A stretch of DNA of 63,028 bases, the filler included, from Octopus bimaculoides (lineage: Eukaryota): assembly GCF_001194135.2 (NCBI RefSeq). It is 4 parts of 4 records of this genome, joined end to end, with 100 filler letters (N's around TTAATTAATTAA, not from the genome) between each part and the next. Parts side by side here need not be neighbours in the genome. Positions count along the whole stretch, not along the records: positions 31,107 to 59,178 come from NC_068983.1; 3 more parts are not named here. One strand, written 5' to 3'. This document shows, piece after piece, positions 31,606 through 55,100 of the stretch. The first letter of the stretch is position 1; each line of letters begins with the position of its first letter. The notes under the pieces were generated by a model, which saw only the letters and a program-made list of their open reading frames with translations, ran no database searches and was not told the origin of the DNA. A program made the translations under genes and the position numbers.

Positions 31606-31995
31606 CTTTACTCTTATTCTTGTTTCAGTCATTTGACTGTGGCCATGCTGGAGCACAGCCTTTAGTCGAGCAAATCTTATTCTTTGTAAGCTTAGTACTT
31701 ATTCTATCGGTGTCTTTCGCCGAACCGCTAGATTAAGGGGATGTAAACACACTAACATCGGTTGTCAAGCGATGTTGGGGGACAAACACAGACACACAAA
31801 CATACACACACACATACTTATACACATATATATACATATATACGACGGGCTTCTTTCAGTATCCGTCTACCAAATCCACTCACAAAGCTTTGGTCAGCTA
31901 TAGTAGAAGACACTTGCCCAAGGTGCCACGCAGTGAGGCTGAACCCGGAACCATGCAGTTCGTAAGCAAGTTACTTACCACACAGCCACTCCTAC
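31606..31995 (-). mobile_element. tRNA-derived SINE
   Basis: Reverse complement of the 2813/24262 family. Confidence 0.8.
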
Positions 31996-33035
31996 GCCTA
32001 TATGTAACTATGTAAATAAAACTTTAGAGAAGCGTCGTAGTCGTCTGAACTGCTAGACAGAACAGCCAAATCTCTTTCAGACTACACTCTACCGTTTTAT
32101 GATAGGAAACATTGGATAACGTAGTCCGATGTAGACTATTCCAGAAAGAAAATGTCATAACAGGAATACGGTCTTTAATCAGAGGTTTATAGGTTTGAAA
32201 CAGCAGGAAAGAACATTAACGGATATACCAGGTTCAAATGGTGGGATACAAATTGCGCGGTAAATGTTTACCCTTGCACCTGCCTCCAAACTCTGGTCGG
32301 CGGACCTTCGGAATATCACTATCTCATGGAGAAGGACTTTCGGAATATCACTGCTTCATGGAGAAAGAAACGGACAAGGAATTGAATGGTTGCTTTCTTT
32401 TGTGAAATAACTTTTTGTCTCCAAAATTTCAGTTTTTTACATTTTTGCACCCATCTCCCCAATTCCGTGCCTTTTTTCATCTTAGGAAACGAGCATAATA
32501 GTAAAATTGTTCTACCAAACTTGCCAGAATTCTCATAACTTTAAAATCTTGGGTCGTGTTATAACCATTCTCATACTCCAAATGGAATTACAGCAGTGAA
32601 CAACATCGCAGGTCGAGCTGTTCTCCCGGGACTTATTTACATTTGTACATCAACGTTAACATAATAGATTGTATCAGGATGTATTAAGATCTAAACAACA
32701 ACAACCACAACAACGACGACAGGTCCCTGAGTGCCATCAGCAGACTTCTTTCTCTGTCAAACATTCAAATTAGACATTCGGTTTTTTACCCCGCACACAT
32801 TTTTACTTCGATTGTACGGACTGGTCATCGGTTGTGCCAATCTTAGCAGTTCGGGAGGCCCTGTAAGGACAGTGGGCACTGCATCTCCTGTTTTAACTAC
32901 TCTTTCCTTTCTCCGTCTCTCACACACGTATTCATTCGATCTTTTGTTTTGTTATTTTTTTAAACATATAAATAATCAACAAAATTTCTTAATTTTACCT
33001 GGCAGTATGTAAATAAACACTAGAGCCTGTCTTAC

Positions 33036-33116
33036 CCGTGATGTCTTTTTGTCTGTGTGACGACTAACTAGTACAGCACTATCGTATTTCACTAAAGATG
33101 CATTTGGTGGAATCAT
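33036..33116 (-). CDS. DNALI1: Axonemal dynein light intermediate chain 1 (p28), first coding exon
   Basis: ATG at 33116 gives MIPPNASLVKYDSAVLVSRHTDKKTSR (27 codons) then the donor |gtaaga. This matches my recall of the vertebrate N-terminus MIPPADSLLKYDTPVLVSRNTEKRSPK. An upstream X-box supports a ciliary gene. Too short for the ORF track. Confidence 0.88.
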
Positions 33117-33148
33117 GGTGTTTTGTTTTTACTTGAGGCAGTGCTTAG

Positions 33149-33173
33149 TTGTTTATTATGTTACCATAGCAAC
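33149..33173. promoter_or_regulatory. Adjacent forkhead site (TTGTTTAT, 33149-33156) and RFX X-box (GTTACCATAGCAAC, 33160-33173)
   Basis: Near-consensus X-box 44 nt upstream of the DNALI1 ATG; RFX plus FOXJ1 is the established motile-cilia regulatory pair. Confidence 0.75.
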
Positions 33174-33339
33174 TGAGCTAATTTTTGCGTAAGATCAAAA
33201 GTGAAAAAAATATTTAAAACTATCAGTTTAATATAAATAATTTTAATTTATTCTATCGAAATTACTTTGGCATAACGTTTTTGTATACAAATTCATATTT
33301 AATCTTTGTACAATCAACAAGGTTTTTACACGCTCAAAG

Positions 33340-33428
33340 TAATAGTATTTTCTGCGGGCCTATTAACATGGCGTAGCATTCCCTCGTGGTGTGAATAGAC
33401 TTATGTTTGTATTTACAGAATGAAACTG
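33340..33428 (+). promoter_or_regulatory. Candidate non-coding first exon of ELP1
   Basis: YY1/TISU-like AACATGGCG at 33365-33373 and donor CTG|gtaatt at 33429. An upstream exon is implied because ELP1 coding exon 1 has a strong acceptor 4 nt before its ATG. Alternative donor AAA|gtaagt at 33726. Confidence 0.45.
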
Positions 33429-34654
33429 GTAATTTATTTATAATTATTTACAGTTGCTTTAATTTTCATCACAGAGAAACATTTACATGGTTTTCTTTTA
33501 GTTGATATTTTTCTTCCTTATTTACGAATATATCTGTCATTCAATTAATTGCGAAACTGGACTCAGAATTGCGTAATTGTGTTTTTATAGATTTATTTTT
33601 TTAAAAACTCTACTTCATGTAATTCAAATTTATTTTGATAATATGAGGTATATTCACTTTTAAATCAAACTCGTTTCTCCGTGTATATATTTTAAATATA
33701 TATATTTAAGCTAAACAACGTTAAAGTAAGTATACAGCGTGCGAATTCGCGTTGTCACGCAATCGGAAATTAACTAAAGAGATACTTATTCAATTAAACA
33801 GGATGAGTCTGGTTATAACCGATCGATTAATTCTTCCACACACTTGATAGAAATGAATTCATTTTCATGTCATTGTGGCATTTTTTTTCTGTCTTAAATT
33901 AAGAAGCGGAATTCAAAGAAAACGCAACTCTTGTAACAAGTGCCCCCTTTTCCTTGATTCTAATGGTTTTGTTATTTTTTAAAGTCTCAATTTATTTATT
34001 TTGAACTTTTTTTTTTATTAAATCTAAAGGTGATCAGTTCTTTTGTTTAAACAATAATACAGATTGTTAAGTGAAACATTTTTATATTTCCGATATTTTT
34101 GTGACAATTGTTAACATAATCCCAGAGAATATATCTGTAATCTTAGCCATTTATTCTTGCTGCATTTTCACACTTTATCACTTCAACATCTCGATTACCT
34201 ACCCCAGTCGCACACATATTGATAAGAGAAAAAAGTATTTAGCATATACGGAATCATTGGAAAAAAACTTGCGAAAAATTACCAAAGCATTTTCCAAGAA
34301 CAATTTCATATCTAGAATCTTCAAATTCCTGTCTGGAATCCTGAAATCTTATCTTCAAGATAACTTTACTAAGGTTTTAGGTCATTCAATTGTAAAGTAA
34401 TTTTCTTTTTATATTTTCAAGATATGTTTAAAATATAATTCAAAGAATTTCTCAACGATTTTGAAATTTGAATAAAACCATTTTCATATGGCTTAGTTAC
34501 ACCAACACAGTCAAATTGGGCGATGTTTTGGAACAGCTGTTCTTTAAAATTCTCGTATCTCATTGGAAATATTTGAAAATAATATTTTCCCGAATTGTTA
34601 TCTGTGGTGTATGAAATAAGTGAATACGTGAAGAAAAAAAGAAGAGTTGGACCT

Positions 34655-34935
34655 CACAGAGGCAATGACCGACACCTTTGGCATTATGTCATGCTTGAGA
34701 AGAAGACCCATCAAACCAAGTAAAATTGCAGTCATGGCAGATACCTGTGTCATGCAAATGGCACGTGAAAGCACCCATTACACTCTCAGAGTGGTTAGCA
34801 TTAGGAAGGACATCCAGCCATAGAAAGCATTCCAGATCAAACTGGAGTCTGACGTAGCCTTCCAGCTTGCCAGCCCTGGTCAAACCATCCAACCCATACC
34901 AGCATGGATGATGGACATTAAATGATGAAGATGAT
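34655..34935 (+). mobile_element. RTE C-terminal end plus 3' UTR
   Basis: GACCTCACAGAGGCAATGACC...CTTGAGAAGAAGACCC then the shared terminal motif and GAT tail; similar to 46280-46560. Confidence 0.7.
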
Positions 34936-34959
34936 ATATATTGTAGCAAAATTCTTTTT

Positions 34960-35385
34960 TTGTTTACTGTGTGGTTAGAAGTTTGTTTCCCAACCACATG
35001 GTTTTAGGTTCAGTCCCACTGCACGGCACCTTGGGCGAATGTCTTCTACCTTAGCCTCATGCTGACCAAAGCTTTGTGAGTGGATTTGGGAGACAGAAAC
35101 TGGAAAATGCCTACCATATATATATATATATATATATTATACACATATCGATGTATGTATATCTTTGTGTTGGTGTTTGTCCCCCCACAACCAGTTGTCA
35201 AGTGATGTTGATGTGTTTACATCCCCATAAGTTAGTGGTTCAGCAAAAGAGACTAAAAGAATAAATATTACAATTTAAACAAAATTTTCTGGGGGTCAAT
35301 TCATTTGACTAAAATTCTTCATGGTGGTGCCCTAGCATGGCCAGAGTCTAATGACTGAAATAAGGAAAAGAAAAGATAAAGAATA
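34960..35385 (+). mobile_element. tRNA-derived SINE
   Basis: Same family as 2813-3195. Confidence 0.7.
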
Positions 35386-35451
35386 ACAAAATCTACCCTT
35401 TTTAGTTATTTAACATTTATTTCTTTGTTTTCTTTTTCATTTTGTAGTAAC

Positions 35452-35607
35452 ATGAAGAACCTTAAATTATTACACTGTTCCCAGACTGAGGAACTGAAGT
35501 CATTCTTAAAGGACACAGTTTGTATTACAACTGACTGTGACACAGGACATGTCTTCTGTGCAACAAAGCATGGGGATCTTGTACAAATAGATTCCAACCA
35601 GAACAAG
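35452..35607 (+). CDS. ELP1: ELP1 coding exon 1
   Basis: [19 protein letters not shown]...QIDSNQNK; acceptor ttgtag| at 35447, donor |gtaact. Confidence 0.93.
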
Positions 35608-38600
35608 GTAACTTTTATTTCTCAATTATGATTTTGTGTATGTGTGTAGGAAAGAAATTTTCTTTTATTGCCAAACCTTTATTGAAACACTCAAACAAAT
35701 ACAGATGTACGTCCTCATAAATGAAACATCCCCAGTACTAAACAGAAGATATACGTAGAAAGTAGTGATACCCCAATACCCACTGTTTAACCCTTTTTTT
35801 GTTATTACAAAGGGATAGTGTTGACACATATACATGCAAGCATCCATCCCATCTAAACTTGGAAAAGTGGTTGTTAAAGTGATGATGGTATATTTGACTG
35901 AGGACTGGCAAACCAGATGGCTGCACCAGGCTCCAATCTAATCTGGCAGAGTTTCTACAGCTGGATGCCCTTCCTAACACCAACCACTCTGAGAGTGTAG
36001 AGGGTGCTTTTACGTTCCACCAACACGAGGGCCAGTCTGGCAGTACTGGCAACGGCCACGCTCAAATGGTGTTTTTTATGTGCCACCTGCACAGGAGTCA
36101 GTCCAGCGGCACTGGCAACGACCTCACTCGGATGTTTTGTTCACGTGCCAGTAAGGCGACACTGTTAACGATCACGCTCAAACGGTGCTTTTTACGTGCC
36201 ACCAGCTCGGAAGCCAGACAGCTGCTCTGGCAATGATCCCGCTCGGATGGTGCTGTTAGCACTCCACTGGCACGGGTGCCAATCATCGAATTTGGTTCAA
36301 TTTCGATTTCACTTGCCCTAACAGGTCTTCGCAAGCAGAGTTTAGTGTCCAATAAAGGAAGGTTGGCATGGGTGCCAGTCGTCGAATTTGGTTTGATTTC
36401 GATACATACATACGAATGCACACACATACACACAGATGAAAAAACACATATGTCAGGGTGTAGTGGTTTGGGAGTGAAAAGGGCCAAATCAAAGAAGGTG
36501 AGATGGAATAGGAAAAGAGAGGAGGATAAATAAAAGGGTCTTTTTTTTTTTAATGATGAATTATTCTTGTTCCTGTTATATTTCAGTTCCTTAATGCTGT
36601 GAACCTGGTTTGTGAAGGCCACCTGTCTAATGAACAAAGTGTTACCTATTTACAACACCTGCCAGAACAACAAAGTGTGAGTGCTGTCACAAACAGTGGA
36701 AGTATTCTTTTATGGTTTTACCTGGAACAACTTGTAAGTTTATCATTTGCTATGCTTCTGTTTTCATTTTGACTGTTAAGTGATAGGAAATATTGAATCT
36801 GCCAGATCAGATTGGAGCCTGGTGCAGCCATCTGGTTCGCCAGTCCTCAGTCAAATCGTCCAACCCATGCTAGCATGGAAAGCAGACGTTAAACGACGAT
36901 GGTGGTGGCCGTGGCGGTCTGTTTGTGGATGATTTGATCAATAGGAAATTGTAAACTTGAGCAAGAGGGTTTTAAAGCAAAATTCACCATCATCTCTCTC
37001 ACTATCATTCTCCTTATCTTACTCTCTAACTCTCTCCTTTCTTTTTCAACTGGATTATCCCTATTTCTACATCAAGACACCTATCTTTGTCGCTCTATAC
37101 CTTTAATCTCTCAACTGGTACAAAGCCATCCACACCTCAATACTACCCCTCCCCTCTCTTTTGAGGGGTTTCTGCTTTTCTTTTAGTCTCTTTTGGTCTT
37201 GCAAGGTACTTGGTGACCCTGTCAGTGACAGTGCCACATGAAAAGCACCAGTGCTGGTGCCATGTAAAAAGCACTAGTCCTGGTGCTGCATGAAAAGCAC
37301 CCAATACACTCTGTAAAGTGGTTGATATTAGGAATGGCATCAAGCTGTAGAAACCCTGCCAAAACAGACCATGGAGCCTAGCATGGCTCCTGGTATCGCC
37401 AGCTCCTGTCAAACCTTCCAACCCATGCCAGCATGGAAAATGGATGTTAAATGATGATGATTGGTGAGAAAAATGACAAGGAATTAAAACTGCTGGCCAT
37501 TGTATAGTGGAGAAAACTCAATGTTGCTATGAACACATAACCATCAGAAAGCAGCAGTTTTTGTTTTAATGCCCATTTTTCCATGCTTGGCTGGGTCAGA
37601 CAGAATACATTGAGGTAGATTTTCTATGACCAGATTCCCTTCCTGTTGACAGCCCGCACCTGTTTCCTAGTTGGGTAATATTTCTCTATGGCCAGACATG
37701 TTTTTCCACAGAAGACTGGAAATGAAAGAATCTGCCTGTATGACTGTGATACTCATTTATAAATATCTCCTGATGTCAAGCCAAAAAATCTCAAAAACAC
37801 ATGTGGTTCATTGTCATTCCATCTGTCACCGAATGGTGACCATCTCATTGCTGTATTTGCATATATTGATATGTTTGTTGCTGGACATATTCAGCCTTCA
37901 TACCCTGCATTCTGTTACTATCTTGGAGTCTTCACAATGATGTTCCTCTTAAATTTCTTCTTTCTCACAGGTTGAATGTGTTGGTGATGTTGAAGATGGC
38001 ATTATTGGTTCTGCTTGGAGTCCTGACCAAGAACTGTTAGTTGTTATTTCAGGTATCTAATACAACATTTCTTCCATCATTCATTGGTACTGGCATAGGT
38101 TGGCTGGGTACTTAGTGGAACAAAGTAATTTTATGGTTGGATGCTCTTTCTGTCACCAATCCTTGGAGTTACTACTTTGAGAGCTTTAGGATAGAATGTT
38201 TACTAAAAATGTTAATACAATTTTTTTTTTGCTTTGTTTTGTTTATCTGGTCTCATGTGAAAAGTAAAAATGACAGCCTTCATATGTGTGCACCACACAC
38301 ATACATAATGGACTTCCAGACAACTTCAGTCAATCACTTTCACTCCCAAAGCATTGTTCAGCTCAAAGCAATAATAGAAGACACTTGCCTGAGGCACTGG
38401 ACATTGAGATTGAACTTGAGACCATGTAGTTGTGAAGTGAACTTCTTAATCTGCCAGATATGTCTGCACCTAATTTTTCTGTTCAATTAATTTTATTTTT
38501 TAACTCAGTTAACCTTATTGGGAAAGTGTAGACTGTCCTTGCCTGTCACCCAACCTGTTGGGGCTGCAGAACATTCACAGTACTTCCAAAGTGAAGGTTT

Positions 38601-41600
38601 GGAATAAGTATACCACCATAAATTTCTTTCAACAATATTTTTGAATAGAACACATACTAGACTTAAAAAGTCTATATTTGTTCTCAGAATCTCCATGACT
38701 TGTTCTGATACTCTAAGCATTCATAACTGGCATCCCATTGGTTATGATGACCTGTGTTCCAGTTGATCCGATTGTCAGAACAGCCTGCTTGGGAAATTAA
38801 CGTGTAAGTGACTGAGCACTCCACAGATATGCATATCCTTAATGTAGTTCTCAGGGAAATTCAGCATGACTCTGACTGTGACAAGGTGAGCCCTTTGGAC
38901 TACAAGTGCTACTCATTTTTGCCAGTTGAGTGTACTGGAGCAATGTAAAAGAAAGCGTCTTCATCAAGGGAACAATGTGCTGCTGGGAATTGAACTCTCA
39001 ATCTTGAACCAAATACCCTAACCACTAAGCTACACACCTTCACAAGCATGCATAGAGGAATGGAATTTCTTGGCCCAAGAGAAGAAACTCAGAACTTTCC
39101 CACATTTTTTCTCATTTCTTTCAAAATATTCCACATGGTATTTACAAGACAGACTCCTTCTGACAAATTGCAGTCATGACATTGTGATAATTTATTTGAT
39201 GCATCAGAAACTTTCAAAATACCTTCAAGAAGAATGGCAATAAAAATAAATTTGCAGTTTATAACCTGTTTCAAAATAGCAGTTTCCTCAGTTTTGATGT
39301 TTGTCTCAGAAATGTCTTTCCCACATCCTGAAGCACAATAGGTATGTCTAGCAGTAACAGTTACTAAATACCCAGATCACCATTGTTCCAGTAAGCACTT
39401 CAGATGTGTACCTTTGTATGCAGTAAACAACTTTGGTCTGCAAAGAAAGTTTTATAAATAACTTAACACACTCCAAAAAACTATTTAACACCTAGTTTCT
39501 TCAATCGCATGAATTACAACCAAATGTGACTGGTGATTGGAGCAATGCATATCCAGAATTTCCTTTCCAATTTTCTGTTATTTCTTGGATGCCACTGGCG
39601 TAGCCAGACATTGCTGTGGCAAGGCATCATCATAGTACTGAGATAAAATGTTTTCCCGTATTAGTCCAACATCGTCAGAACTTTGAAAAATAACATTAAC
39701 CAAACTTTCGACCTTTGAGTCTTTGGTCATTGTTAAAGTGATCTAACTTTCTGATTCAACCCCCCCCCCCCNNNNNNNNNNGAAATAATTTCAGTATTTG
39801 GAGGATCCATATAATTGCTCTGTTGAATTCAAGTTATTTTATTTTACTTAGAAGTTTTTTTGTGTTTTTTTTTTTTTTAGGCTCTAATTCTTTGATTTTA
39901 ATGACCAGAGATTTTGATCTTCTGCAAGAAACAGCATTGCATCCAGATACATTTGGTGAAGGTAATTATGTTCCATGTTAAATTAATTGTCATATTGTGG
40001 GTGGTGGGTGGCAGAGTCTGTAAGGTGACCATGTGATATTCGATTACATAGCCATTATATTATGTTCAGGATTCAAATTCTACTCAAGTTGATATTAACT
40101 TGATTTTTTTCCAAGGTCAGTAAGTACTGGCATCGATATAACCAGCAGTGTCCCAGCATGGTCACAGCCCATGGACCAACATGAATTAAAGAATGGACTA
40201 AGGAAATAAAATTTGATCAAATAATTAAAGTATAAGAAATATTTTAAAATGTCTGATTTATATATTTTTCCCCTTAATTGTATTACATTTTAGCTCTCAA
40301 GTTTTCATCCATCATTAAAAAACATATTGTTTTGTGCTTATCTATTTATCATCATCATGATGCTGGCATGGATTAAACAGTATGACAGGATTTGATTAAC
40401 CTGAGGACTGCATTGTGCTTTAGTGTTTGCTTTAGCATGGTTTCTATGGCTGGGTGCCCATCCTAACACCTGCCACTTTACAGAGTGTATTGAGTGCTTT
40501 TTTCATGTCACCATCACCAGTGAAGTTGCTATGCAACTTGCAAGATTACATATAATTATTTACACACATAACAGAATGCCTGTGCCATCAATAATGACAA
40601 TGGGTGTTTTACTAAACTCTGTGATAATTACAACATTTAGGCTTGTATGTATGAATATTCAATGTTTTCCAAATGGAAGACATTGTAGTGTTATTCAGGT
40701 GTTATTCAATGATGTAAATGATGAAAATTGCTAATGAGGGTATGAGAATGTAAATAGAAACCCCAAAATAAGAGAAACACAAAATTTTATTATACACGTT
40801 TTATCACTTAATATGTAAAAATATTGCAGTCAGTGATTCATTTGTTATTCTACATTATTATTTTCTACACTAAATGTCCTACCTAATTTCATAAGTGTTG
40901 CATATGTGTATGTATTCAAAAATGCCAAAATATACGCATATGTATACACTGGTACTCACATTTTTCAAGGGACTTCAGGTTTAGTTTATGCAAAAGCTGT
41001 GCATTTACAACATATTTGACATATTCCTTGCAAATAAATTTGATGCACAGCGATAAATAAGAAAAATAAGTTGTTTATTTTTGAGCTTTATAATGAGCTG
41101 TATGTATGCTCCTACAATATAATTTAAATCTGTGAAATTTATTTTTTGTTCCAATACAAAAGCATTATATATATCATCATCATCATCATTTAGTATCTGC
41201 TTTCCATGCTGGCATTGGTTAGACTGTTTGACTGGTACTGGTAAGCCAGAGAGCTGCACCAGGTTCTAGTCTGGTTTGGCATGGTTTCTATGACTGGATG
41301 CCTTTCCTAATGCCAACCACTCTGAAAGTGTAATGGGTGTTATTTATGTGCGACTGGCATGGGTATCATCCATGTGACACCAGCATTGACCATGACTATG
41401 ATTTCACTTAGCTTGATGGGTCTTCCCAAGCACAGCATATTGCCAAAGGTCTTGGTCACTAGTCATTGTCTCCACGAGGCCCAAAGTTTGAAGACCATGC
41501 TTCACCACCTTGTCCCATATTTTCCTGGGTCTACCTCTTCCACAGGTTCCCTCCACAGAGATTGGCACTTCTTTATGCAGCTGTCCTCATCCGTACACAT

Positions 41601-43157
41601 CACATGACCATACCAGTGCAGTCATCTCTCTTGCACACCACATCTGAAGCCTCTTATGCCCAACTTTTCTCTCAAGATGCTCACACTCTGTCATACATGC
41701 ACACTGACATTGCACATCCAGTGAAGCATACTAGCTTCATTTCTTTCAAATCTCTGCATGTCCTCAGTGGTCACAGCCCATGTTTCACTGCTGTGTAGCA
41801 TGACTGTTCACACACAGGCATCACACACACATATATATATAAGGAAAAGAATCTGAAAATGCAGGAGTCTTTTAAAAGTATTTACTAACCTAACTGGTTT
41901 CACTTATTTAAAAAGATTTTCAAAAGTAAAGTATGAGGCTTTGTGTATCCTCTGTGGTGTCAAAAATTAGTTTACATAAATGTATTGAAATCAAGTGATA
42001 GAGTCTTTGACAATGATAGGAAAAATGTTGAGGCTTTGTGTATCCTCTGTGATGAATCAAAAAATAGTTTACATAAAACATTCAGATCCGGGAATAAAAA
42101 GTTTTAACAATGATAAGAAAATAAAAATTAGTTTACATAAATATATCCAAATCTAGTAATAGAGTCTTTGACAAGAAGATAAGTGGTGTTTGGTTTGTCA
42201 ATCAATGGGTGCTAAAGTGTTAGTCTTATTGATGGTTTCTGATTACAGTGAGACTTGTACTTTAGCACTCACTGACTGACAAACCAAACACCATTTATCT
42301 TCTTGTCAAAGACTCTATTACTTGATTTATGTAAACAATTTTTACCTTCTTATCATTGTGAAGCATTTTATTCCCTGATCTGAATGTTTTTATGTAAACT
42401 ATTTTTTGATTCATCACAGAGGATACACAATGCCTCAATAATTTTCCTATCATTGTCAAAGACTCTATCACTTGATTTCAATACATTTGTGTAAACTAAT
42501 TTTTCACACTACAGACGATACACAAAGCCTCATACTTTACTTTTGAAAATCTTTTTAAATAAGTAAAACCGGTTAGGTTAATAAATACTTTTAAAAGATT
42601 CCTGCATTTTCAGATTCTTTTCCTTATATTTTTACTTGTGCTGTAACCCCCAACTTTAATTTGTTGTGTGTGTGTGTGTGTGTATACATAGAATGTATTG
42701 CATATATGCATAGAAATCCAATCGTGCAGTGTAATGAAAAGGCTTAAGATAAATGCATGGAATCTCTCAGTAAGTTGAATATATAAGGTAATAGTAGAAT
42801 ATATGTAGTAGAATAATTAATAGTGGAATTAATTTGCATATGCAAATACATATATTGTATTAAATATATATTGACACATAGTGTACTGTATATATTGATT
42901 AGATTTACCAATGAGAAAAAAGAGAAAATTAATTTAATCATCAGAATTTATGAATATAAAAACATTAGTCAAGCATTATGAGACAAAGAAGACAGCGGGA
43001 TGAACTTTCAAGTACAAAATATAAACAGAACAACTGCAGCCAGTAAGTAGAGCCTGTGTCAGATAATCTAGAAAGTAAACCACATAAAGGGGAACAACTT
43101 CCACAATTTGAATGGGTTGTATGCACAAAACATTATGTATATAAAAATACAATTAAC

Positions 43158-43190
<33 letters not shown>

Positions 43191-46100
43191 AAAATTTATA
43201 ATTATAAATTTTATTCTCTAGCTATTGAATGCTATTATTACTTGCTATATTTTTACACCTGTATTTTTGTTGTTGTTATTATCTAAATTTACTGCTGATA
43301 ATAATACCAATAAAATTATCTTTGTAGATATTCATTTGAATATTCACTCCTTATATATATAATATATAGATAGATAGATATCTTTCTTTATTAGCCACGC
43401 AGGGCTGAACACAGAGGGGATGATACAATGTAGAATTTTTCTTTTTGAAAGAAAGAAAAGAAAAATACGATCAAAAGGGATTGAAAGTGTTTGGGACGTG
43501 TAAACAGCAAAATAAGGCGGGGTAAAAATGTAAAACAGATCAGGTTTATCCATGGAAAGAAAGGCCTATGGCACAACTGAAATAATGGTTAACAACTTTT
43601 TTGCAAAGTTTCTCATTACACCAGGTAAAAAAAAACCAGTAAATTTTCACCATATTGCATCGTTATCATTAGCATAACAATGCTAATGATAATTGAATCC
43701 AATATTGGCAGATTGACGGGATTGGTAGACAGATAACCAAAATGCCTTTTAATATTTAGTTAATCCAAAGGTGGCCAGCTGGTAGAATCGTTAGTACACT
43801 GGGTGAAATGCTTAGTGGCATTTCTTCTGTCTTTACATTCTGAGTTCAAATTCTGCTAAGGTCAACTTTGTCTTTCATCCTTTTGAAGAGTATATCAGCT
43901 GAAACGTGTTAACAAGCAAGATGAGGACAAATATCTGTCAAATGTAAATAATGTTTCATTTTCAGATGAATTTTTTTTATAGTATTTTTAATGCTGGTTA
44001 TGAAAATGACTTTAGTTTTTATCTATTTCCAATATTTTATTTGAAATTTTATCTTGAGAATACCATTTTCGGCAAAAATGAGATAACTCATCTTCCAGTA
44101 TCTTCTTAGTATTTTTTTAATTATTGCTTTTATTTTTCCTAACTTTATCATCAAACGTAACAGGGAATTACACATTTATTTTACTCTTGTTTTAGCATGT
44201 CTTCTCAAATTTTTTTTTTATACATTTATTTTTCTGAGCTCAACTCAACATCTGTATATAATTTATACTAGAAAAAAAAACCCAGAAAATAGCTAGAAAT
44301 GCTGTAAATTGACATATTAACTTGTCTGTTACTGTTTTTGAAATTATGTTTTGGACGAGTTTACTTGTCACATTCTGAAAAAGACAAATTAGGTGAAGAC
44401 AAGTTAACTCATCTTTGCTGGGTAAGAGGTTAATGGCCATGTGCTAAAATTTGAAACTAACATTTAGTTAATCCCTCTATGTTCTAAGTTCAAATCCTGA
44501 TGAGGTCAACTTCATTCTTTTGAAGTCAATAACATAAAAGTGTTGGTCTTAGTTATATTGACTTTACTCTCCAAGAAATACATGGCTTTGTGCTTATATT
44601 AGAAATCAATAATAATTTAGAACAAATTTCTGTAGAATTACATTGTAGCTATTTGCTTACTCTGATGTTACTTGTCAATTCCCAGGCAGCGTTTATAATT
44701 TTAAAGCTGATTGAATGGTACTTCTCAAGTGTCAAAACCATAGTAATAATATCCATTGGGCAGCTGATGATGGGAATCCACATTTATTATGCTTGATTGT
44801 GAATTTCTTATATCTAAATCTCATTATTTTGAGTTGTCCTTCATTCTAGTAAAGTGGAAAGTGTTCATGGGGATCACTTTCGTATTGGTTGGTTTTTCTT
44901 CATAGGTAATCTTAGGCATAGATAATTCTTAGGTGTTGGTGTCTAATTTTGGGAGGTCTTATGACACATATTTCTATATGTAAAACATATTTTTCATATT
45001 AATTATTTTCTTTTAGCGGAATTCATAAACGTTGGCTGGGGTAAGAAAGAAACACAGTTCCATGGAACCGAAGGTAAAGAAGCAGCCAAGAAGAAATCTG
45101 AGGTTAAGATCCTTTCTTTCTACTTTCTTTAGATAATTTCTTAAGTTTCATGTATCTCTTCTGATATTTTACTACAGCTTCTTTTGTTACTCCTTCATGT
45201 ACAACAATTTATCTTTTTCATTTTTTATTTAAGCCAGCTCAGCCAGCCCTAGAATGGGACGATATGAAGGCCTATATTAGTTGGCGTGGAGATGGCCAAT
45301 ACTTTGTGACTTCTACCATACATCAAGGTATTGAATTTTTAATATTTCTGAAAAAGTGGCGAGCTGGCAGAAATGTTAGCACGCCGGGAGAAATGCTTAG
45401 CGGTATTTCGTCTGTCTTTACATTCTGAGTTCAAATTCCACCAAGGTCAACTTTGCCTTTCATCCTTTCGAGGTCGATTAAATAAGTACCGGTTATGCAC
45501 TGGGGTCGATGTAATTGAGTTAATCCCTTTGTCTGTCCTTGTTTGTCCCCTCTGTGGGCAATAGAGAAATAAATATTTCTGAAATATAATGTTATGTTAT
45601 TATAAATATTATTTGATCAGCTTTACTGTTACAAATATTTTAATTTACACCATTTGATGTGGTTAAGAGGCTCATTTTGTAACCACATGGTTTTGGGTTC
45701 AGTCCCACTACATGGCACCTTAAGCAAGTGTCTTTTATGGCCTCAGGCTGACCAATGCCTTGTGAGCGAATTAGGTAGATGGAAACTGGGTGAAAGCTCA
45801 TCATTCATGTGTGTGTGTATATATATGTGTTTTATGTTTGTCTCCTCACCACCACTTGACAACCAATGTGGGTTTGTTTACAACCAAATTAAGTTTTAAT
45901 ATAGAATGTTGTCTATCACAACAATTTAGTTTCAATTCTTTTACACAGTAAATTGAATAATTTTATTCAAAGTATTTAAAATATCTAAATCATTGCTTTA
46001 AATATCAGAAAATTTCTATGTTCAAGTATTTCAAAGTACACAGTACCGCCTGACTGGCCTTCGTGCCGGTGGCACGTAAAAGCACCCACTACACTCTCTG

Positions 46101-49100
46101 AGTGGTTGGCGTTAGGCAGGGCATCCAGCTGTAGAAACTCTGCCAAATCAGATTGGAGCCTGGTGTAGCCATCTGGTTCACCAGTCCTCAGTCAAATCGT
46201 CCAACCCATGCTAGCATGGAAAGCGGACGTTAAACGATGCTGATGATGTTGACCCAACCAAAGTCTTGTGAGAGGCTTTGGGGCCTCATGGGGGCAATGA
46301 CCAAGGCCTTTGGCATTATGTCGTGCTTGAGAAGAAGACCCGTCAAGCCAAGCAAAGCTGCAGTTGTGACAGATATCGGTGGCACGTAAAAGCACCCATT
46401 ACACTCATGGAGTGGTTGACATTAGGAAGAGTATCCAACTGTAGAAACCATACTGAAACAAACAACTGGATCCTAGTGCTACCCTCTAGTTTGTCAGTTC
46501 CTGTCAAACCATCCAACCCATGCCAGCATAGAAAATGGACTTTAAATGATTGATGATGATCTGTTATTAAACAGGGTAAATAGAAAGGCGGTGAGCTAGC
46601 AGAATCTGAGTGGTATTTTGTCCGTCACTATGTTCTGAGTTCAAATTCCACCGAGATTGACTTCACCTTTCGTCCTTTTGAGGTCGATTAAATAAGTACC
46701 AGTTCCACACTGGGGTCAATATAATCAACTAGTCCCTTCCCTAGAAATTTGAGGCCGTGTGCCTCCTGTAGAAAGAACTAATTAGGATAAAGAGGACCAT
46801 TTACTCTTGGTTTAGATGTAACTACCTATGTAGTTCTAGTACTTCAATAAAATGTACTCAGTATACTCCAAAAAGTGGTTGGTGTTAGGAAGGGCATTCA
46901 GGACATCAAAACAAAACCAAAAATTGAAACTTCAAACAGGATATGATCCTCCAGCACATCTCATCATCATCATCATCATCATCATTTAGCATCCGCCTTC
47001 AAGCAATATCTTGCTTGAAAACAGGTATGGATTGGTGACAGGAAGCGCATCCAGGTGGTGATGGTGATAAATTTGGTGTATTTTTTTCTTTTTGTTTTCT
47101 TAGGTTATCGTCAGCTCAGAGTTTGGACAAGAGAGGCTGTTCTTCATTCCACCAGTGAGTTAGTAGTCGGTCAAGAAAAAGAGGTTGCTTGGAAGTAAGA
47201 TTCTTTTTCTCGGGTTTTTTTTTTTTTTTTTTTTGCTGATAGGTTTTATAGAACAGAGATGTGTGGGGTGAAGTTGTTTCGTATGAGGCGGACTGAGAAT
47301 TTGATAGGAAAGCTGGGGTTGGAGGAATTGGTGGAATGGTTGGCAAGGCCGAATGGAGTGAGGTGGTATGCACATGTGTTGAGGAGGGTGATTGTGTTTG
47401 AGGTAAATGGAGCGCGAAAGCAAGGTAGACTGAAGGATTGGTTTGGAAAAGGAGGATGCCCAAAACCGGGCGAGATGGTGTGAGAGCAGTTGCTATGGCA
47501 TTGAACTAGATCTGGCCACCCCTGTTAATGGAGACAAAACCTGGATTTAAAACACTGGATGATGATGATGGTGAGGTAAGATTCTAATGAGTTGACAACC
47601 TGCTTTCACTTTCCAGTGGCAGCTATTGGACTTTAAAGATATGAACATCACAACATTTATATCTCTTTTCTCCGTTCTCAGCTAATCAGATATCGTTAGA
47701 TATCTTTGGTTACAACTAAAGGAATTCATTTTGGTTTATCACACTGTGATGTAGGATAAATATTGATTGATTGATTGGTTTTTACATTGAAAAGACAATC
47801 CAATCATTCAAATACTTAACTTATTGTAAAATGTTGTACAAAATAACTTAGCTAATCATCATCATCATTGATTAACGTCTGTTGTCCATGCTGGCATTGG
47901 TTGGACGGTTTGACTAAGGTCTGGAGGGCCAGTGGCTGCACCAGGCTCCAGTATGATCTGGCAGAGTTTCTACAGCTGGATGCCCTTCCTAATGCCAACC
48001 TCTCCGAGAGTGTAGTGGGTGCTTTTTACATGTCACGATCGGTTGGTGCTTTTTACATGCCACCGGTACCAGAACCAGTAATGTTGAGGTAATTATTGAA
48101 ATGTTATACAAATAATGAACCCAATAACTAGGCTTCCAAGTGTAAAGATGGTGGTAAACTACATCTTGAGGGATTTAATCTGAGACTGACCTTTTAGCTT
48201 TACAAAATAAATTTGAACGACTTAGTTGATGGTGGCTCAATTAGTTTTGTTGGAGTTTTTTAACCATTTAGTTAGCAAGGGAATGGAAGCATCCAGGATC
48301 CTTTTTCAAGGTTTCCAGGGTTAGACTTGACCCAAATACTATAACAGAGTGAAGTCCCCTAGAAGCACCTAAAGATCACATGGTGTTAAACCAGGCAATC
48401 GGCTAACTCTGATAATGTACAACTGCATTGATAGTTATAGGTTGGCCAAAAATGACTTGGAATGTGTACATTGTATCAGACCTTCTCTGCAGTTAAATTT
48501 CATCTGTATAAGGCAGTGTAGGATGGTGATATGGTCTTGTAAGAACTTATCCATTCTGTACTTAATACAAACCTCTTATCTTTTCCTTTCATTTCAGACC
48601 TACTGGCAGTTTAATTGTTAGTTCTCAGGTCAAGCCAAATAAACATGATATTATATTCTTTGAACAGAATGGTTTACAACATGGGGAGTTCACTTTACCT
48701 TTTGATGTTCAAACCACACAGGTATCTATTTCAATTTAGCCTATTAATTTTTTAAAGCTATTTACTTGTTTTGGCTGTAATTTTTTTTTTGCTTTATTTG
48801 ATTTATTTTAACGCTTTGACACCAACCCACCTGAGACACATGTGCCTCTTTGATACAAACTTTCCATTTTAAAGTGTTCTAAATTAAAATCTCCCATAAA
48901 AATTTCATGTTAATAATTAACTGAAATAAAAGCAGTGTGTTTCAACAGAAGTATGGTAATGAAAGGGCCAAATAGTTGCTATAAAGAAGGGACACTAACA
49001 CATGCATACATCTACATGAATATATATAAATATAGGTGTGCATGCTTCTTTGAGGCTTTTTCTTTAGCTGGATCACCCTTGCTTACCCCTAACCTCAGTT

Positions 49101-52100
49101 TCTAGACATGAGTGGTCCTGAGACCAAGGCCTCTACCATGATTTTTAAGAAATGTGGTGGATGCTGGGGTTGGAAGAATCAGTGGAATGGCTGGCAAGGG
49201 TGAGTGGAGTGCAGTGGTATGGGTATGTGTTGAGGCAGGATGAGGAGCATGTTCTGAAGAGGGTGCTAGAGTTTTAGGTAAATGGACAGCAAAAGTGAGG
49301 TAGACTGAGGCAAATGTGGAGGGGGCAGGTGGAGGAGGAGGTTGGGAGGTTTGGCTTGAGAAGGGAGGACGCCCAAAACTGGGCAAGATGGTGTGAGGGC
49401 GGTTGCTATGGCATTGAGGAGATCTAGCCACCCTTGTTAACGGGGAGAAAACCCGGATTCAAAATGATGGATGGATAGGCAGGTGTACATGCTTCCCAAC
49501 CATGTGGTTTCAGGTTCAGTTCCATTGCACTGTATCTTGGGTATGTGACTTCTTCTATAGTCCTGGGTCAACCAAATCCTTGTGAGTGGATTTGGTGGAC
49601 AGACACTGAAAGAAGCTCTCTGTGTTTGTGTGTGTGTGTATATCTTGTGAAATCACATGAGTGTTGTAAATAAGCATTACCGTCCTACAATCAAGGTTGT
49701 TCGTTTCCAGTCTGCCACTGAAAACATGGCTATGAAGAAATATTACTTTACTTGAAAACAGGAAGGTCATTCTGTAGAAAATCTGCCTCAACATATTCTA
49801 TCCGAACCATGCAAACCTGGGAAAGTAAATGTTAAAACAATGATGATAAGACACATACAAACAAACATATATATAAGTATACACACATACATATATACAT
49901 GGACTCATATACATGTGTGTGTGTGTGTATGTATATATATATGTATATACACACACATGTGGAGGCGCAATGGCCCAGTGGTTAGGGCAGCGGACTCGGG
50001 GTTTTGATTCCCAGACCGGGCGTTGTGAGTGTTTATTGAGCGAAAACACCTAAAGCTCCACGAGGCTCCTGCAGAGGATGGTGGCGAACCCTGCTGTACT
50101 CTTTCACCACAACTTTCTCTCACTCTTACTTCCTGTTTCTGTTGTGCCTGTAATTCAAAGGGTCAGCCTTATCACACTCTGTCACGCTGAATATCCCCGA
50201 GAACTACGTTAAGGGTACACGTGTCTGTGGAGTGCTCAGCCACTTGCATGTTAATTTCACGAGCAGGCTGTTCTGTTGATCGGATCAGCTGGAACCCTCG
50301 ACGTCATAAGCAACGGAGTGTCAACAACAATACACACACATACACATGAACCTGTGCTGGTGCCACGTAAAAAAAAGTGTGCAGTACACTCTGTAAAGTG
50401 GTTGCCATATGGAAGAGCATCCAGTCATGGAAACTATGTCAAAACAGGCAGTTGGAGCCTGGTGCAGCTCCCTGGCTTGCCAAGTCCTATCAAACTGTCA
50501 AACCCATACCAGCATGAAAAGTAGATGTTAAATGATGATAATGTTGATGAACACATAGTATTATTATAAAAGATAGTGAAATAGCAGAAACATGGGGGCA
50601 TTGGACTTGTGTTTAACCCATAAAGCACTGGGATTTGCACTTACATAGCATGGACTGCTGAGCACATTTTATAAAAATAAGACTACCATGCACACATAAA
50701 AACCAAAAATAGTTTAAATGCCTTCTTAGTATATATTGGTGGCAAGTTTTACATCATCTGAAAAGTCATTAGTTGAACTATTAGTCCTCTTGCATTCTGT
50801 GGGGTATCGGAGCATTTGAGTGACATTAGACCCCAACAAATGCCCATAAATTAAATGCATCAGTCTGGGTCACAATCATGGCCTGTCAACCTGTGCCTGA
50901 CAGCCACGATTGTGGCCCGGCTCGCTTTATGTGTTTAAAGATAAATACTGATCATGTACTCAGGTTGATTGAATTCATTGTACTCTTTCATTACAAACTC
51001 ACACTCTTGTGCCAAATAAGAACATGTTGTTGTTGTCATTGTTTTGGTTGCCAGTGTTTGTGAACAGCAAATATGTCCCGGCAGACACAGCTGTAGACGA
51101 ATCTGCTTAAAAATATTGGTAAATGATTATCTGAAGTTCATTAATGTGGCTGTTTTGTCTTTACTGTAGGTGAAGAAGCTTCTTTGGAACATAGACTCCA
51201 CAGTGTTGCTCATATGGTGTGAAGAACTGAACAAAAATGAAAAACTCCAGCCAAAGTCTTTCAGTAAGTTTGAATGCCAAAGCATAAGACTTGATAGAAT
51301 ATTGCCTCGTGTAGTAATCAAACAAATACCAGTAATAAACTGGTATGATTCAATGAGCTATCAAGTGTGATGTGTGATTGCAAGAAAATGTTCTGGTGCC
51401 AAGATAAGAAGTCATTATTACAGCTTGTAGTGCAATATGTCTAGTATTAAATCTATGAGAGTGTAAGTTATTTAATTTACTCTAGCTAGTTTGTTATCCT
51501 TGACTAATTGAAAGGAAGAATTTTAGTATGACAGAAGGCCATTTGTTAAGCGCCTAAGCGACATTACGAAATATCAAGATAGATACTTCTCACTTATAGC
51601 ATAAAGAATGAAAATGAGTGATCGAGTGACAAAGATTCCTGTAACAGCTTGAAATCACTGAAAATCCCTTAAAATTTTGGGCGTTTACATCCTTCTACTT
51701 AAGGTTCTTTGAGTTTCTCGAAGCATCTTGAATCTTAATTTTTGGAACAAAAATTGATAAAATTCAAGACGTTTTTGCCTATATGTTAAATTGACCAATG
51801 ATGGTAGACTTTCTAACATTATTTCATTGATCTAACTAATTTCACACCAAAGGAATATTTCAGCATGTTAACAAACTAATCTGCCTGAATTTATGAATAG
51901 ATGTCTTTATTACCATGTCACTACACTGGTGTCACACAAATAGCACGTAAAAGCACCCATTACATTTTCAGTGTGGTTGGCATTAGGAAGGGCATCCAGC
52001 CATAGAAAACCATGCCAAATCAGACTGGTGTCTTGTACAGCCTTCCAGCTTACCAGCCCCAGTCAAACCGTCCAACCCATGCCAGCTTGGACAACGGACA

Positions 52101-55100
52101 TTAAATGATGATGATGATGATAGAGGATATATTATCATTGAGCGAGAGAGCAGTGCATACCATCAAAGTGATGGTATGTAACCCAGTATACCCATCATGG
52201 TTACTTGTCTGATAAGAGTACACTAGGTGCATGCATCACAATCATGTGCACAACATGGTGACATCATATCTGGATAAACACAACATGACCATGTAGGTGG
52301 GGCTGAGTTAGAATTTTCTGGTTGAGTAGCCCATCCCACTCAAAGGATCTCTAAATAAGGGTTGTTTAAGAGTGATGAGTGAAACACCCATGTTTCCAGG
52401 GTTGAATTTAAACTCCTCTCAACTCATGGCTACAATGCTCCCCCACTGTTTGTGATCAAAGATGCACATATTGTCAACAACTAAAGGACATGCTCAACTG
52501 GTTATGGTCAAGCAACTGACAAGCAAATCTGTGGTATTGAGCAGAATATTTGCTATAGCTCATCTTTTACATCAAGACAAAACAAGTACATTGTTATTCA
52601 TCATCATTATCATCATTTAACGTTCGTTGTCCATGCTGGCATGGGTTGGACAGTTTGACCAGTGCTGGCAAGCCAGAGACTGCACCAGGCTCCAGTCTGA
52701 TCTAACATATTTCTACAGCTGGATGCCCTTCCTAATGCCAACCACTTTGCAGAGTATGCTGAGTAACGGCCAATCAGTATTATCCGACAGCTTTATATTT
52801 ATGACCTTCCAGAATTTTGAGAGTTAAACTTGCAATCATCAGATTATGGCTGAATGGAAAAGTGTTGCTTAGCTTCTTTGCTATTGGAGGCCTGAAACCA
52901 CCACATCTGTCTTATATTCTGTTAAAAAAAAACACATGTATGCAATCCCTAGATGGAAGAACATCATAAAGGAGACAAAACAAGAACATGGCTTGCTCAT
53001 AAGCCCCCTCAGCCCCTTGGGTTGTTTTTTTTTATTTAGTAATCTTCAAATGGCTAAATGTTTACTCCAGTTGTATGCAATATTATTTAGAATGAAGAGA
53101 AGGAGCAAAGATTGTGGTAAGGATAGAGATTTGCAGACAAGATAAGGGAGGTAGGGTTTTTTTTGTTTTGTTTTTTAACCAGAAAGCCTGCAGTTTTAGT
53201 ATGTGTATATACATATACATTTTCTTTCAATATCTATATGTAATCAGAAACGGAATGGGTGCTGAACTACTACTACTACATATTTAGAAATAATACATTT
53301 CTAAATCTCTCAGAGAGATTTATGCAGTAGTGATGCGAGTTGTATGCTGTCAACTTGATGTGACAGTCCACTGAAGNNNNNNNNNNTGCAGTAGTGATGC
53401 GAGTTGTATGCTGTCAACTTGATGTGACAGTCCACTGAAGGGAATAATACTACTGTTGGTTAGACCTAGGAAGCTGCAACACTTCCTGTCAGCCTTAACA
53501 CATTTCCTGTGTCCTTATGGTTACATAAAGACAAGAGAATTGTGGACACATAAGGACACAGGAAATGTGTCAAGGCCGACAGGAAGCGGTGCAGCTTCTT
53601 AGGTCTAACCAACAGTAGTATTATTCCCTTCAGGGGACTGTCACATTAAGTTGACAGCATACAACTATTACATATTTGTTTTTAATTTGTACAATATATT
53701 GCCATGAAATTATATTTAACCTTTTTTTCTGTTTTTTTTTCTTTGCAAATTTTCTCCTCAAGTCCAGTTATGGACAGTTAACAATTATCACTGGTACCTA
53801 AAACAGAGTTTAGTCTTTGATCCAGCCAAAGAGAAGGAAGTTGCAGCTCTTCTATGGGACCCTGAACAAGCATACAAGCTGCATATTGTCACTTCAGATG
53901 GCTGCTATATGCATTACTCATGGTACTGGAACACTGTAGTCAGTGATGATAGTGTTGTGGCTGTCATTGATGGAGGTATGTTTTTTTTTTTGTTTTTTTT
54001 TATCATATCATATTTACTTCCATTTTTTCATGCTTGTATGGTTTAGACAAGTATTTCATCTCATTAATAATTAACTAAGAATATGGTTTGAATTTTTTAA
54101 TGTTGAACGATTTGAAGCTTTAAATTTTATTTTCTCTCGAACGAAAACTGAAAATTTATTTTAAATCTTATATTTCTTTTGTAGCTCAGATTTTGGTAAC
54201 ACCCATGGCACTACAGGTGGTACCACCTCCTATGTATACCTACAAATTACTACTTCCTGCTCCTGCCAACCAGGTGTTCTTTTTTCCATCATCACCATTG
54301 AATAACTATGGTATGCCCACAGCTGATATCGGTGTTCTTTTAGACAATGGAGTGATTGCATTGTTTACTTATCATGAAAACAATAGTAAGTTATTTTCCT
54401 ATGTTAAGGAGACAAACGTGTATACACACACACACACAATGTGCCTACAGCACACAAAAAAAGCATCCTCTAATTCCTCCCCCCCCCCCCCTATTGTGGC
54501 AAGACACCTGCTTCTGTCTCTTTGTCACATTCTATTTCTAACCTTTCATCCTCTGACACAAGTTTCTCTCCTCAAATGCTCCTGCCCCTCTCACAATTCC
54601 TTGTCTTGTGAGTTACTTAGTTACCCTGCCAGTGCTGGTGCCACATTAAAAGCATCCAGTCCACACTGTAATGTGGTTGGCATTTGAAAGGGCATCCAGC
54701 TGTAAAAACCATGCCAAAACTGACCTTCCCTGTGCTGGTGCCACATAAAAAGCACTGAGTCCACTCTATGGGGTGGTTGGTGTATAGAAGGGCATCCAGC
54801 TGTAAAAATCATGTCAAAACTAACCTCGCCTGTGCTAGTGCCATATAAAAAGCACTGAGCCCATTCTGCAGAGTGGCTGGTGTTAGGAAGGGCATATGGC
54901 CGTAAAATCCCTGCCAAAAACAGATACAGTAGCATAGAGTAGTTTTCCTACCTGGCCAGCTCCAGTCAACTGTCTTACCCATGCATGCATAGAAGATGGA
55001 TGTTAAACGATGATGATAATGATGATATACATAGAAACTATGCCAAAGAAGACATTGGACCCCAACACAGCCCCTGCAACCTGTCAAACCATTCAACCCA

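Follow-up and report, generated by a model that had tools for sequence, protein, structure and literature searches.

DNALI1 is an inner-arm axonemal dynein light-intermediate chain, and ELP1 is the scaffold of Elongator. Among the closest described systems are those that control axonemal dynein genes, DNALI1 included. In Drosophila, DNALI1 (CG6971) is co-regulated by Fd3F and Rfx, and the fly Fox and X-box motifs are tightly spaced and usually lie ≤50 bp from where transcription or translation starts (Newton et al. 2012, PMC3414849; Diggle et al. 2014, PMC4168999). In mouse testis, Dnali1 belongs to the RFX2-regulated gene set (PMC4745085), and work on Rfx2 and Foxj1 in Xenopus describes vertebrate control of axonemal dynein genes by RFX2/RFX3 and FOXJ1 (PMC5245798). 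We analyzed a 63,028-nucleotide stretch of Octopus bimaculoides DNA (the window), of which a 28-kb piece, positions 31107 to 59178, comes from NC_068983.1. In this piece, as a sequence-only reading had proposed, DNALI1 (minus strand) and ELP1 (plus strand) are arranged head-to-head and divergent, with their ATGs at 33116 and 35452, respectively. A functional pairing would be a new link from a cell-type-specific ciliary program to a general translation-tuning factor.

The first coding exon of DNALI1 occupies positions 33036 to 33116 on the minus strand (81 nt, 27 codons, with the ATG at 33116 to 33114) and encodes MIPPNASLVKYDSAVLVSRHTDKKTSR, with the N-terminal peptide MIPP..SL.KYD..VLVSR at residue 1. 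That this exon is the DNALI1 N-terminus, as the sequence-only reading had suggested, was borne out by the homology check proposed with it: phmmer against the PDB with the peptide returned residues 1 to 25 of human DNALI1 (8j07; E=1.7e-4) and also Chlamydomonas p28 (E=0.011). A Pfam search of the 27-residue peptide alone gave no match. The exon shares 85% identity with the first exon of ~50 invertebrate DNALI1 loci, each with the same 27-codon exon, and the later exons of these loci carry PF10211 (Ax_dynein_light). It ends at a phase 0 5′ splice site (33030 to 33035, minus strand; CGG followed by GTAAGA) whose score of 5.75 is the best in the window, above every ELP1 donor there. The same exon end is common to all of the homologous loci, where read-through starts with a V from GTN. 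The sequence comparisons thus support the assignment of the minus-strand peptide to DNALI1. A search with a DNALI1 sequence, used as a lead, found this to be the sole DNALI1 exon inside the 28-kb piece; because intron 1 in DNALI1 homologues is often 0.3 to 2.3 kb or longer, an exon 2 beyond 31107 would be unremarkable. At four sites that are nearly invariant across the ~50 other loci, the octopus peptide departs from them (N13S, P14A, N20H, and P26S).

Upstream of this exon, the sequence-only reading had pointed to an X-box with a forkhead site beside it, and both elements held up. The predicted RFX site at 33160 to 33173 (GTTACCATAGCAAC; GTTGCTATGGTAAC in the DNALI1 orientation) lies at −57 to −44 from the DNALI1 ATG and is a full palindrome, with 0 mismatches to GTNRCC N0-3 RGYAAC and to GTTNCCATNGNAAC; the latter pattern matched once in the 28-kb piece, versus 0.012 to 0.018 matches expected (6e-5 per 150 nt). 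The forkhead core, ATAAACA, lies at 33150 to 33156 on the minus strand (−40 to −34), 3 nt past the X-box in the DNALI1 sense. With 114 RYAAAYA matches in the piece (~1 per 250 nt), the core alone is not significant, but the conserved X-box/Fox composite of other DNALI1 promoters lends support to where it sits. Nearly all other DNALI1 loci have X-box-like sites 57 to 164 nt before the ATG (background, 0.066 per 120 nt), and in 13 of them (L007, L015 to L018, L023, L025, L028, L035, L041, L045, L047, and L049) X-box and Fox follow in the same order and on the same strand, with a 4-nt gap. In a 12-species alignment (A1), TAAACA is invariant against a mean column identity of 58%; the Fox core is absent or differently placed in L003/L005, L011, L012, and the L014 group. 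DNALI1 5′UTRs in cDNA contigs of other species are 48 to 139 nt long. The core also fits RYMAAYA, close to the X-box and no more than ~50 bp from the start of translation. On motif statistics, cross-species conservation, and the published fly and mouse data, the two sites make a credible motile-cilia module of the RFX/FoxJ1 type and, by their motifs, show the familiar RFX/FoxJ1 signature of genes for axonemal dyneins. The two elements would make up a proximal promoter module for DNALI1, in which an RFX dimer would bind the palindromic X-box with a FoxJ1-type forkhead factor alongside, and together, if motif, position, conservation, and fly and mouse genetics are a guide, they would turn DNALI1 on in cells building motile cilia or flagella.

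The gene on the plus strand is ELP1, in agreement with the sequence-only reading. The exons of ELP1, DNALI1, and EMC2 (see below) were located with human sequences used as leads only, and the spliced ELP1 and EMC2 models were confirmed afterwards by Pfam and the PDB. The ELP1 model has 11 coding exons. Exon 1 (35452 to 35607; 52 codons, MKNLKLL...) is placed by the spliced model, Pfam, and human ELP1, and exons 2 to 10 are placed by the spliced model with Pfam and the PDB (36587 to 36733, 37971 to 38052, 39881 to 39961, 45017 to 45102, 45234 to 45327, 47104 to 47194, 48598 to 48721, 51170 to 51263, and 53763 to 53975); exon 11 (54185 to 54385) starts the second beta-propeller, and its 3′ boundary is the least certain. 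PF04762 (first beta-propeller) spans profile positions 1 to 359 of 359 from ELP1 residue 1 (E=9.9e-104), PF23797 (second propeller) matches the model with E=1.8e-12, and residues 1 to 425 align to residues 1 to 432 of human ELP1 (8ptx_A; E=1.6e-123). These alignments support both the identity of ELP1 and an orthologous start at 35452. Smaller or unspliced queries were uninformative: exon 1 alone gave nothing useful in Pfam and only WD-repeat noise in the PDB, four unspliced ELP1 fragments had no match in a protein database, and a 4.9-kb concatenate of all open segments had none in the PDB. No ELP1 exon beyond exon 11 was detected in 54386 to 59178; the C-terminal alpha-solenoid/TPR and dimerization region of the protein falls past the modeled exons and the end of the piece.

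The distance from ATG to ATG is 2,336 nt, of which ~620 nt is interspersed repeat (~1.7 kb without repeats). An ELP1 first exon had been expected ~200 nt beyond the X-box; there is no ELP1 coding sequence there, and the first coding exon lies 2.28 kb from the X-box. Directly before the ELP1 start, we identified a candidate 3′ splice site of a 5′UTR intron (35423 to 35447, plus strand; ctttgttttctttttcattttgtag followed by TAACATG), 4 nt before the ATG. Its pyrimidine fraction of 0.85 falls among those of the 10 coding-exon acceptors (0.70 to 0.95), and it is the single AG site among 111 in the spacer to reach ≥0.85, the other 110 being below. Solemya ELP1 has tttttttttttttgacag 20 nt before its ATG. 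Given this strong acceptor, a non-coding first exon and the gene's own promoter most likely lie upstream, and the sequence indicates that ELP1 is likely to have a non-coding upstream exon. The AT-rich spacer at 33174 to 34648 (plus strand) is the most likely zone for both, and ELP1, as a broadly expressed gene, would have a promoter of its own somewhere within it. This spacer region contains a CpG cluster (observed/expected, 1.8 to 2.6 at 33600 to 33900 versus 0 to 0.35 at 34600 to 35600, with no CpG at all in 35200 to 35600), and the top-scoring plus-strand donors of the spacer are at 33725 (AAA followed by gtaagt), 34029, and 33428. Open reading frames in 33174 to 34648 had no Pfam match, and neither Rfam families nor tRNAs were found in the 28-kb piece. 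Self-BLAST of the piece delimited two interspersed repeats, one at 34649 to 34941, from a family that has up to 12 copies there, and a second, SINE-like one at 34967 to 35270, with an inverted copy in DNALI1 intron 1 (31693 to 31985); both would probably sit in the ELP1 5′UTR intron. An ATGGCG at 33369 was considered as a YY1-type element or as the start codon of an ELP1 first exon and was rejected, being a single short motif that reads M-A-stop.

We then compared the neighborhoods of the two genes in other animals. The head-to-head partner of DNALI1 in the annelid Lamellibrachia satsuma (L004) is EMC2, with the two gene models 175 nt apart, and EMC2 is also upstream of DNALI1 in four metagenome-derived invertebrate contig sets (L003/L005, L006, L030, and L037). 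ELP1 was upstream of DNALI1 in 0 of ~50 loci, of which ~12 extend ≥2.3 kb upstream. From the other side, DNALI1 was not found within 10 kb upstream of ELP1 in the coral Desmophyllum pertusum or in the bivalve Solemya velum, on which the proposed check of mollusc microsynteny was run and went against the pairing. In human, SNIP1 and GNL2 flank DNALI1, and ELP1 is head-to-head with ABITRAM; a search for ABITRAM upstream of ELP1 in the coral and the bivalve gave no match but is uninformative, as the query sequence may be faulty. The supplements of a cephalopod microsynteny paper (PMC9023564) mention neither DNALI1 nor ELP1, and literature searches found no paper naming DNALI1 together with ELP1 and none linking DNALI1 and EMC2 as neighbors. 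Because the pairing is absent at every other locus examined, its best reading is as the product of a lineage-specific rearrangement, and the adjacency may have replaced an older EMC2-DNALI1 pair that is still present in other lophotrochozoan-like genomes. Among the compared loci, which exclude other cephalopods and close relatives, the DNALI1-ELP1 neighborhood looks like an ordinary, lineage-specific one and not a new regulatory link; other members of its clade might share the pairing, which would leave room for selection.

We consider it probable that the locus combines an RFX/Fox promoter for DNALI1 with a separate promoter for ELP1 in a lineage-specific adjacency, with nothing to indicate that Elongator is coupled to ciliogenesis. 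The sequence-only reading had described a promoter shared by both genes and suggested such a coupling. Neither was supported: the ATGs lie 2,336 nt apart, with ~620 nt of repeat between them, and the pairing is absent from all other loci examined. A shared promoter, which we regard as unlikely, would require an ELP1 non-coding exon within a few hundred nucleotides of the X-box, so that RFX/Fox boosts both genes; ELP1 would then rise along with DNALI1 in ciliated cells, testis, or sensory neurons. The head-to-head geometry over only 2,336 nt (~1.7 kb without repeats) is compatible with this, as are the strong acceptor by the ELP1 ATG, which puts the ELP1 start further toward DNALI1, and the CpG cluster and plausible donors 450 to 900 nt from the DNALI1 ATG. 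Given an exon so placed, the two promoters could overlap physically, and the X-box, being palindromic, could work toward both genes. In other taxa, the X-box of DNALI1 lies inside a very tight bidirectional region shared with EMC2 (gene models 175 nt apart in Lamellibrachia). Against a shared promoter, the pairing is conserved at no other locus examined, the X-box and Fox core are placed and oriented just as in DNALI1 promoters without ELP1, and the unique part of the spacer toward ELP1 has no second X-box (≤2 mismatches); the single further match of this kind between the genes (35207 to 35220) falls inside the SINE-like repeat. There is only a slight chance, in our estimation, that the rearrangement itself set the ELP1 promoter beside the DNALI1 X-box and Fox core, with the X-box working two ways and the DNALI1 X-box being habitually paired with a housekeeping gene. 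Were this true, RFX and FoxJ1 would raise the expression of ELP1, and with it the capacity for tRNA U34 modification, in motile-ciliated cells, sperm, or ciliated sensory neurons, and the DNALI1 X-box promoter may habitually be one half of a bidirectional unit whose other half is a housekeeping gene (EMC2 elsewhere, ELP1 here), as it would gain from a constitutively open neighbor.

Separate promoters could also arise in another way, with no 5′UTR intron and the ELP1 promoter directly before the ATG, at or past the SINE-like element, so that the two promoters would be fully independent at a distance of ~2 kb. The AT-rich DNA here has many T-rich tracts, which leaves this arrangement some plausibility, but we think it rather improbable, since the acceptor-like tract stands alone among the 111 AG sites and matches real ELP1 acceptors, and a similar tract precedes the Solemya ATG at 20 nt. 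Moreover, the repeat appears, by eye against the copy at 31693 to 31985, to reach to ~65 nt from the ATG, so that little unique promoter sequence is left, and CpG is missing from 35200 to 35600. Very improbable, finally, is that the DNALI1 exon and promoter are a relic stranded by rearrangement outside any intact gene. The piece does hold DNALI1 exon 1 only, and its four substitutions fall at nearly invariant sites; however, the frame is open, the donor is the top-scoring one in the window, the X-box is perfectly kept, the Fox core is correctly placed, and an exon 2 past 31107 fits the intron 1 lengths of the homologues.

With a known RFX/FoxJ1 signature and an ELP1 neighborhood not common to other animals, the evidence points against a functional DNALI1-ELP1 link. 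What is gained is a clean annotation of the missed DNALI1 first exon and of the 5′ end of ELP1, a non-model example to add to the conserved X-box/Fox composite, and a hint that the lineage of the window lost an older EMC2-DNALI1 pair.

Set beside known arrangements, the locus shares with generic metazoan head-to-head pairs the divergent orientation and short spacer. Such pairs are usually defined by transcription starts <1 kb apart; here the ATG-to-ATG distance is 2,336 nt, and the pairing is not conserved. In the EMC2-DNALI1 pair, DNALI1 also diverges from a housekeeping gene with an X-box in the short spacer, but the partner is EMC2 in place of ELP1, the gene models are much closer together (175 nt in L004), and the spacer carries an NRF1-like GCGCATGCG 8 to 12 nt from the X-box that the window lacks. 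As in the vertebrate RFX2/RFX3 and FOXJ1 system, where Dnali1 is within the RFX-dependent cilia/flagella set and Fox and RFX factors co-occupy ciliary promoters, the octopus gene has a predicted RFX/Fox module, known from its motifs; its genomic neighbors are different. The Drosophila Rfx/Fd3F (FoxJ1-like) module differs in that fly Fd3F targets often have one strong half-site, whereas the X-box in the window, known here from its motif, is fully palindromic. Yet the fly module targets the same gene family, including CG6971, and, as in the window, its X-box fits GTNRCCN(0-3)RGYAAC and is closely spaced with RYMAAYA, both ≤~50 bp from the translation start.

As the sequence-only reading had proposed, an 81-nt exon encodes the DNALI1 N-terminus. 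In the AT-rich (~37% G+C), repeat-rich piece at 31107-59178, minus-strand positions 33116-33036 read ATG ATT CCA CCA ... CGG, specifying the peptide MIPPNASLVKYDSAVLVSRHTDKKTSR, and GTAAGA follows immediately, a donor whose score (5.75, simple metazoan matrix) exceeds that of every ELP1 donor in the window. At 27 residues the peptide is below the useful length for Pfam; searched against all PDB chains with phmmer, it matched only axonemal dynein light-intermediate chains, including human DNALI1 (residues 1-25, E=1.7e-4) and Chlamydomonas p28 (E=0.011). With the 46-residue read-through ORF as the query, we found eleven short gene calls starting MIPPNASLVKYDNPVLVSRNTDKKTPR, one of which, from Lamellibrachia satsuma, is annotated as an inner dynein arm light chain, and PF10211 (Ax_dynein_light) occurs in later exons of contigs bearing such calls. 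A search with codons 1-12 written as a degenerate DNA pattern recovered 40 more DNALI1 loci. The exon ends after codon 27 in every genomic locus, where the read-through has a GT-derived valine, so conservation extends to both the 27-codon exon and the phase-0 intron after it. Exon 1 is all that the piece contains of DNALI1, no further exons being found there by tblastn with a DNALI1 query used as a lead only. The N-terminus in the window (33036-33116) differs by N13S, P14A, N20H and P26S from a peptide near-invariant in ~50 invertebrate loci.

Upstream of this exon, at -57 to -44 from the ATG (33160-33173), lies the X-box GTTACCATAGCAAC, which has zero mismatches to GTTNCCATNGNAAC and GTNRCCNNRGYAAC and is the sole such site in the ~28-kb piece; the number expected per 28 kb ranges from 0.012 under independent bases to 0.018 under a first-order Markov model (2,000 simulations), and per 150-nt promoter window it is ~6e-5. 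The forkhead core ATAAACA (33150-33156) follows 3 nt downstream on the DNALI1 sense strand. Taken alone it is weak evidence for a Fox site, RYAAAYA occurring 114 times in the piece (~1 per 250 nt), and our view of it changed because of the comparison with other DNALI1 promoters. Of 31 other distinct genomic DNALI1 loci whose upstream sequence reaches 150 nt or more, nearly all have an X-box-like site (at most two mismatches; background, 0.066 per 120 nt) 57-164 nt 5' of the ATG. At about -110 to -80 in the invertebrate DNALI1 locus L007 and twelve related loci (L015-L018, L023, L025, L028, L035, L041, L045, L047 and L049), the X-box is followed by exactly 4 nt and then RTAAACA on the sense strand, and L. 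satsuma (L004) has the composite in imperfect form. An alignment of the twelve related promoters (mean column identity, 58%) shows TAAACA to be invariant and most X-box columns to be invariant or nearly so. The window pair has the same order and orientation, but its gap is 3 nt. DNALI1 5'UTRs in cDNA contigs of other species measure 48-139 nt, which would place the composite at the transcription start or immediately 5' of it. Judged on sequence and conservation, the near-perfect X-box and adjacent forkhead site of the earlier reading form a real module, which by homology would work through RFX/FoxJ1 control. Two more conserved blocks, GTTACTTACT and CAGCAGGTGCTCGTTCTCGCAC, lie upstream in the X-box/RTAAACA loci; L006, another DNALI1 locus, has a perfect X-box (GTNRCCNNRGYAAC) in intron 1 (10677-10690) besides its degenerate promoter X-box. 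In the window, a single short motif on the DNALI1 side, TTACGCAA (33190-33197), is a candidate bZIP (C/EBP/PAR-like) half-palindrome and lies 17 nt upstream of the X-box.

On the opposite strand, an ATG at 35452 (+) opens MKNLKLL..., in a first coding exon that by itself is not diagnostic in Pfam or PDB. We located ELP1 exons with a human ELP1 query (a lead only), choosing AG/GT boundaries to keep frame, and then checked the resulting 456-residue model, of eleven coding exons spanning 35452-54385 (+), against both databases. It matched PF04762, the first propeller, from residue 1 (profile positions 1-359, E=9.9e-104), PF23797, the second propeller (E=1.8e-12), and human ELP1 (8ptx_A; residues 1-425 against 1-432, E=1.6e-123). 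Both the Pfam and PDB alignments begin at residue 1, which makes 35452 the orthologous start codon. The proposed head-to-head arrangement of DNALI1 and ELP1 was thus borne out, the divergent start codons lying 2,336 nt apart. Two runs of exactly 10 N (39772-39781 and 53377-53386) mark assembly gaps within ELP1 introns.

The sequence 4 nt before the ELP1 ATG, ctttgttttctttttcattttgtag, resembles an acceptor, its pyrimidine fraction (0.85) falling within the range of ten real ELP1 acceptors (0.70-0.95), and none of the 110 other AG sites in the spacer between the start codons reaches at least 0.85. In the bivalve Solemya velum, tttttttttttttgacag lies 20 nt ahead of the ELP1 ATG, and a non-coding ELP1 first exon upstream of the ATG is therefore likely. 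The ELP1-nearest part of the spacer is CpG-depleted and filled by two interspersed repeats, at 34649-34941 and 34967-35270. The former belongs to a family with up to 12 copies in 28 kb (76-84% identity), chiefly in ELP1 introns (35892-36130, 37256-37473, 41162-41361, 46041-46560, 47855-48064, 51922-52169, 52597-52765 and 58821-59107), and the latter to a second, SINE-like family (31693-31985, inverted, and 45681-45789); ARAGORN and Rfam called no tRNA in either. The sole CpG cluster of the spacer lies at ~33600-33900 (observed/expected, 1.8-2.6), and the top plus-strand donors are at 33725 (AAA|gtaagt), 34029 and 33428. The first exon that the sequence-only reading had placed ~200 nt beyond the X-box would use the weakest of the donor options, and nothing singles it out. 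We infer that ELP1 transcription starts within 33174-34648, 0.06-1.5 kb from the X-box.

A survey with the 456-residue model gave 1,292 relatives; the 120 listed include no cephalopod and only one mollusc. In S. velum, whose contig is chromosome-scale, another minus-strand gene occupies the 10 kb upstream of ELP1, and no DNALI1 exon is present there; no X-box lies close to the ELP1 start, a lone loose-consensus match being 8.3 kb off. The second half of this ELP1 (second propeller and alpha-solenoid; L001, 21317-26551) is annotated on the strand opposite the first, for which an inversion, on the one hand, and a misassembly or split gene model, on the other, are the alternatives. In Desmophyllum pertusum, a coral (L051, 7441-9354), the head-to-head neighbor ~650 nt upstream of ELP1 is a 181-residue protein that has no Pfam match and is not DNALI1. 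It may be ABITRAM-like, ABITRAM being the head-to-head partner of human ELP1; an approximate ABITRAM query did not match it. From the DNALI1 side, ELP1 was upstream at none of ~50 loci, about a dozen of which extend 2.3 kb or more upstream. EMC2 (PF22890) is head-to-head with DNALI1 in L. satsuma (L004, 1-10001), its model ending 175 nt from the DNALI1 ATG, and also in at least four other invertebrate contig sets: L003/L005 and L006 (in each case upstream of 10001), L030 and L037. These loci have an NRF1-like GCGCATGCG 8-12 nt upstream of the X-box, which the window promoter lacks. EMC2-DNALI1 may represent an ancient bidirectional pair that has been conserved; we found no paper describing it. 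The supplements of a cephalopod microsynteny paper (PMC9023564) list neither DNALI1 nor ELP1. Absence in Solemya, the coral and ~50 DNALI1 loci points therefore to a derived, lineage-specific DNALI1-ELP1 adjacency, as judged on loci sampled outside cephalopods.

The best-supported interpretation is that DNALI1 would carry a conserved RFX/FoxJ1-type proximal promoter, that ELP1 would be a housekeeping neighbor with its own predicted upstream non-coding exon, and that their adjacency would be a by-product of rearrangement. That the two genes share a promoter is unlikely, since nothing positive speaks for it and conservation, the sole test possible, came out against it. Less probable still is that DNALI1 exon 1 is a relic: its frame, donor and motifs are all intact, although we note that four residues nearly constant elsewhere are substituted here.

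Head-to-head gene pairs are common, and ELP1 as a DNALI1 partner is new but without conservation. RFX/Fox control of DNALI1 is established: Drosophila axonemal dynein genes, including CG6971 (DNALI1), are co-regulated by the FoxJ1-like Fd3F and Rfx (PMC3414849), and RFX2-regulated genes in mouse testis include Dnali1 (PMC4745085). The X-box/Fox arrangement in the window matches the Drosophila Fd3F/Rfx signature and so adds a further example, in another phylum.
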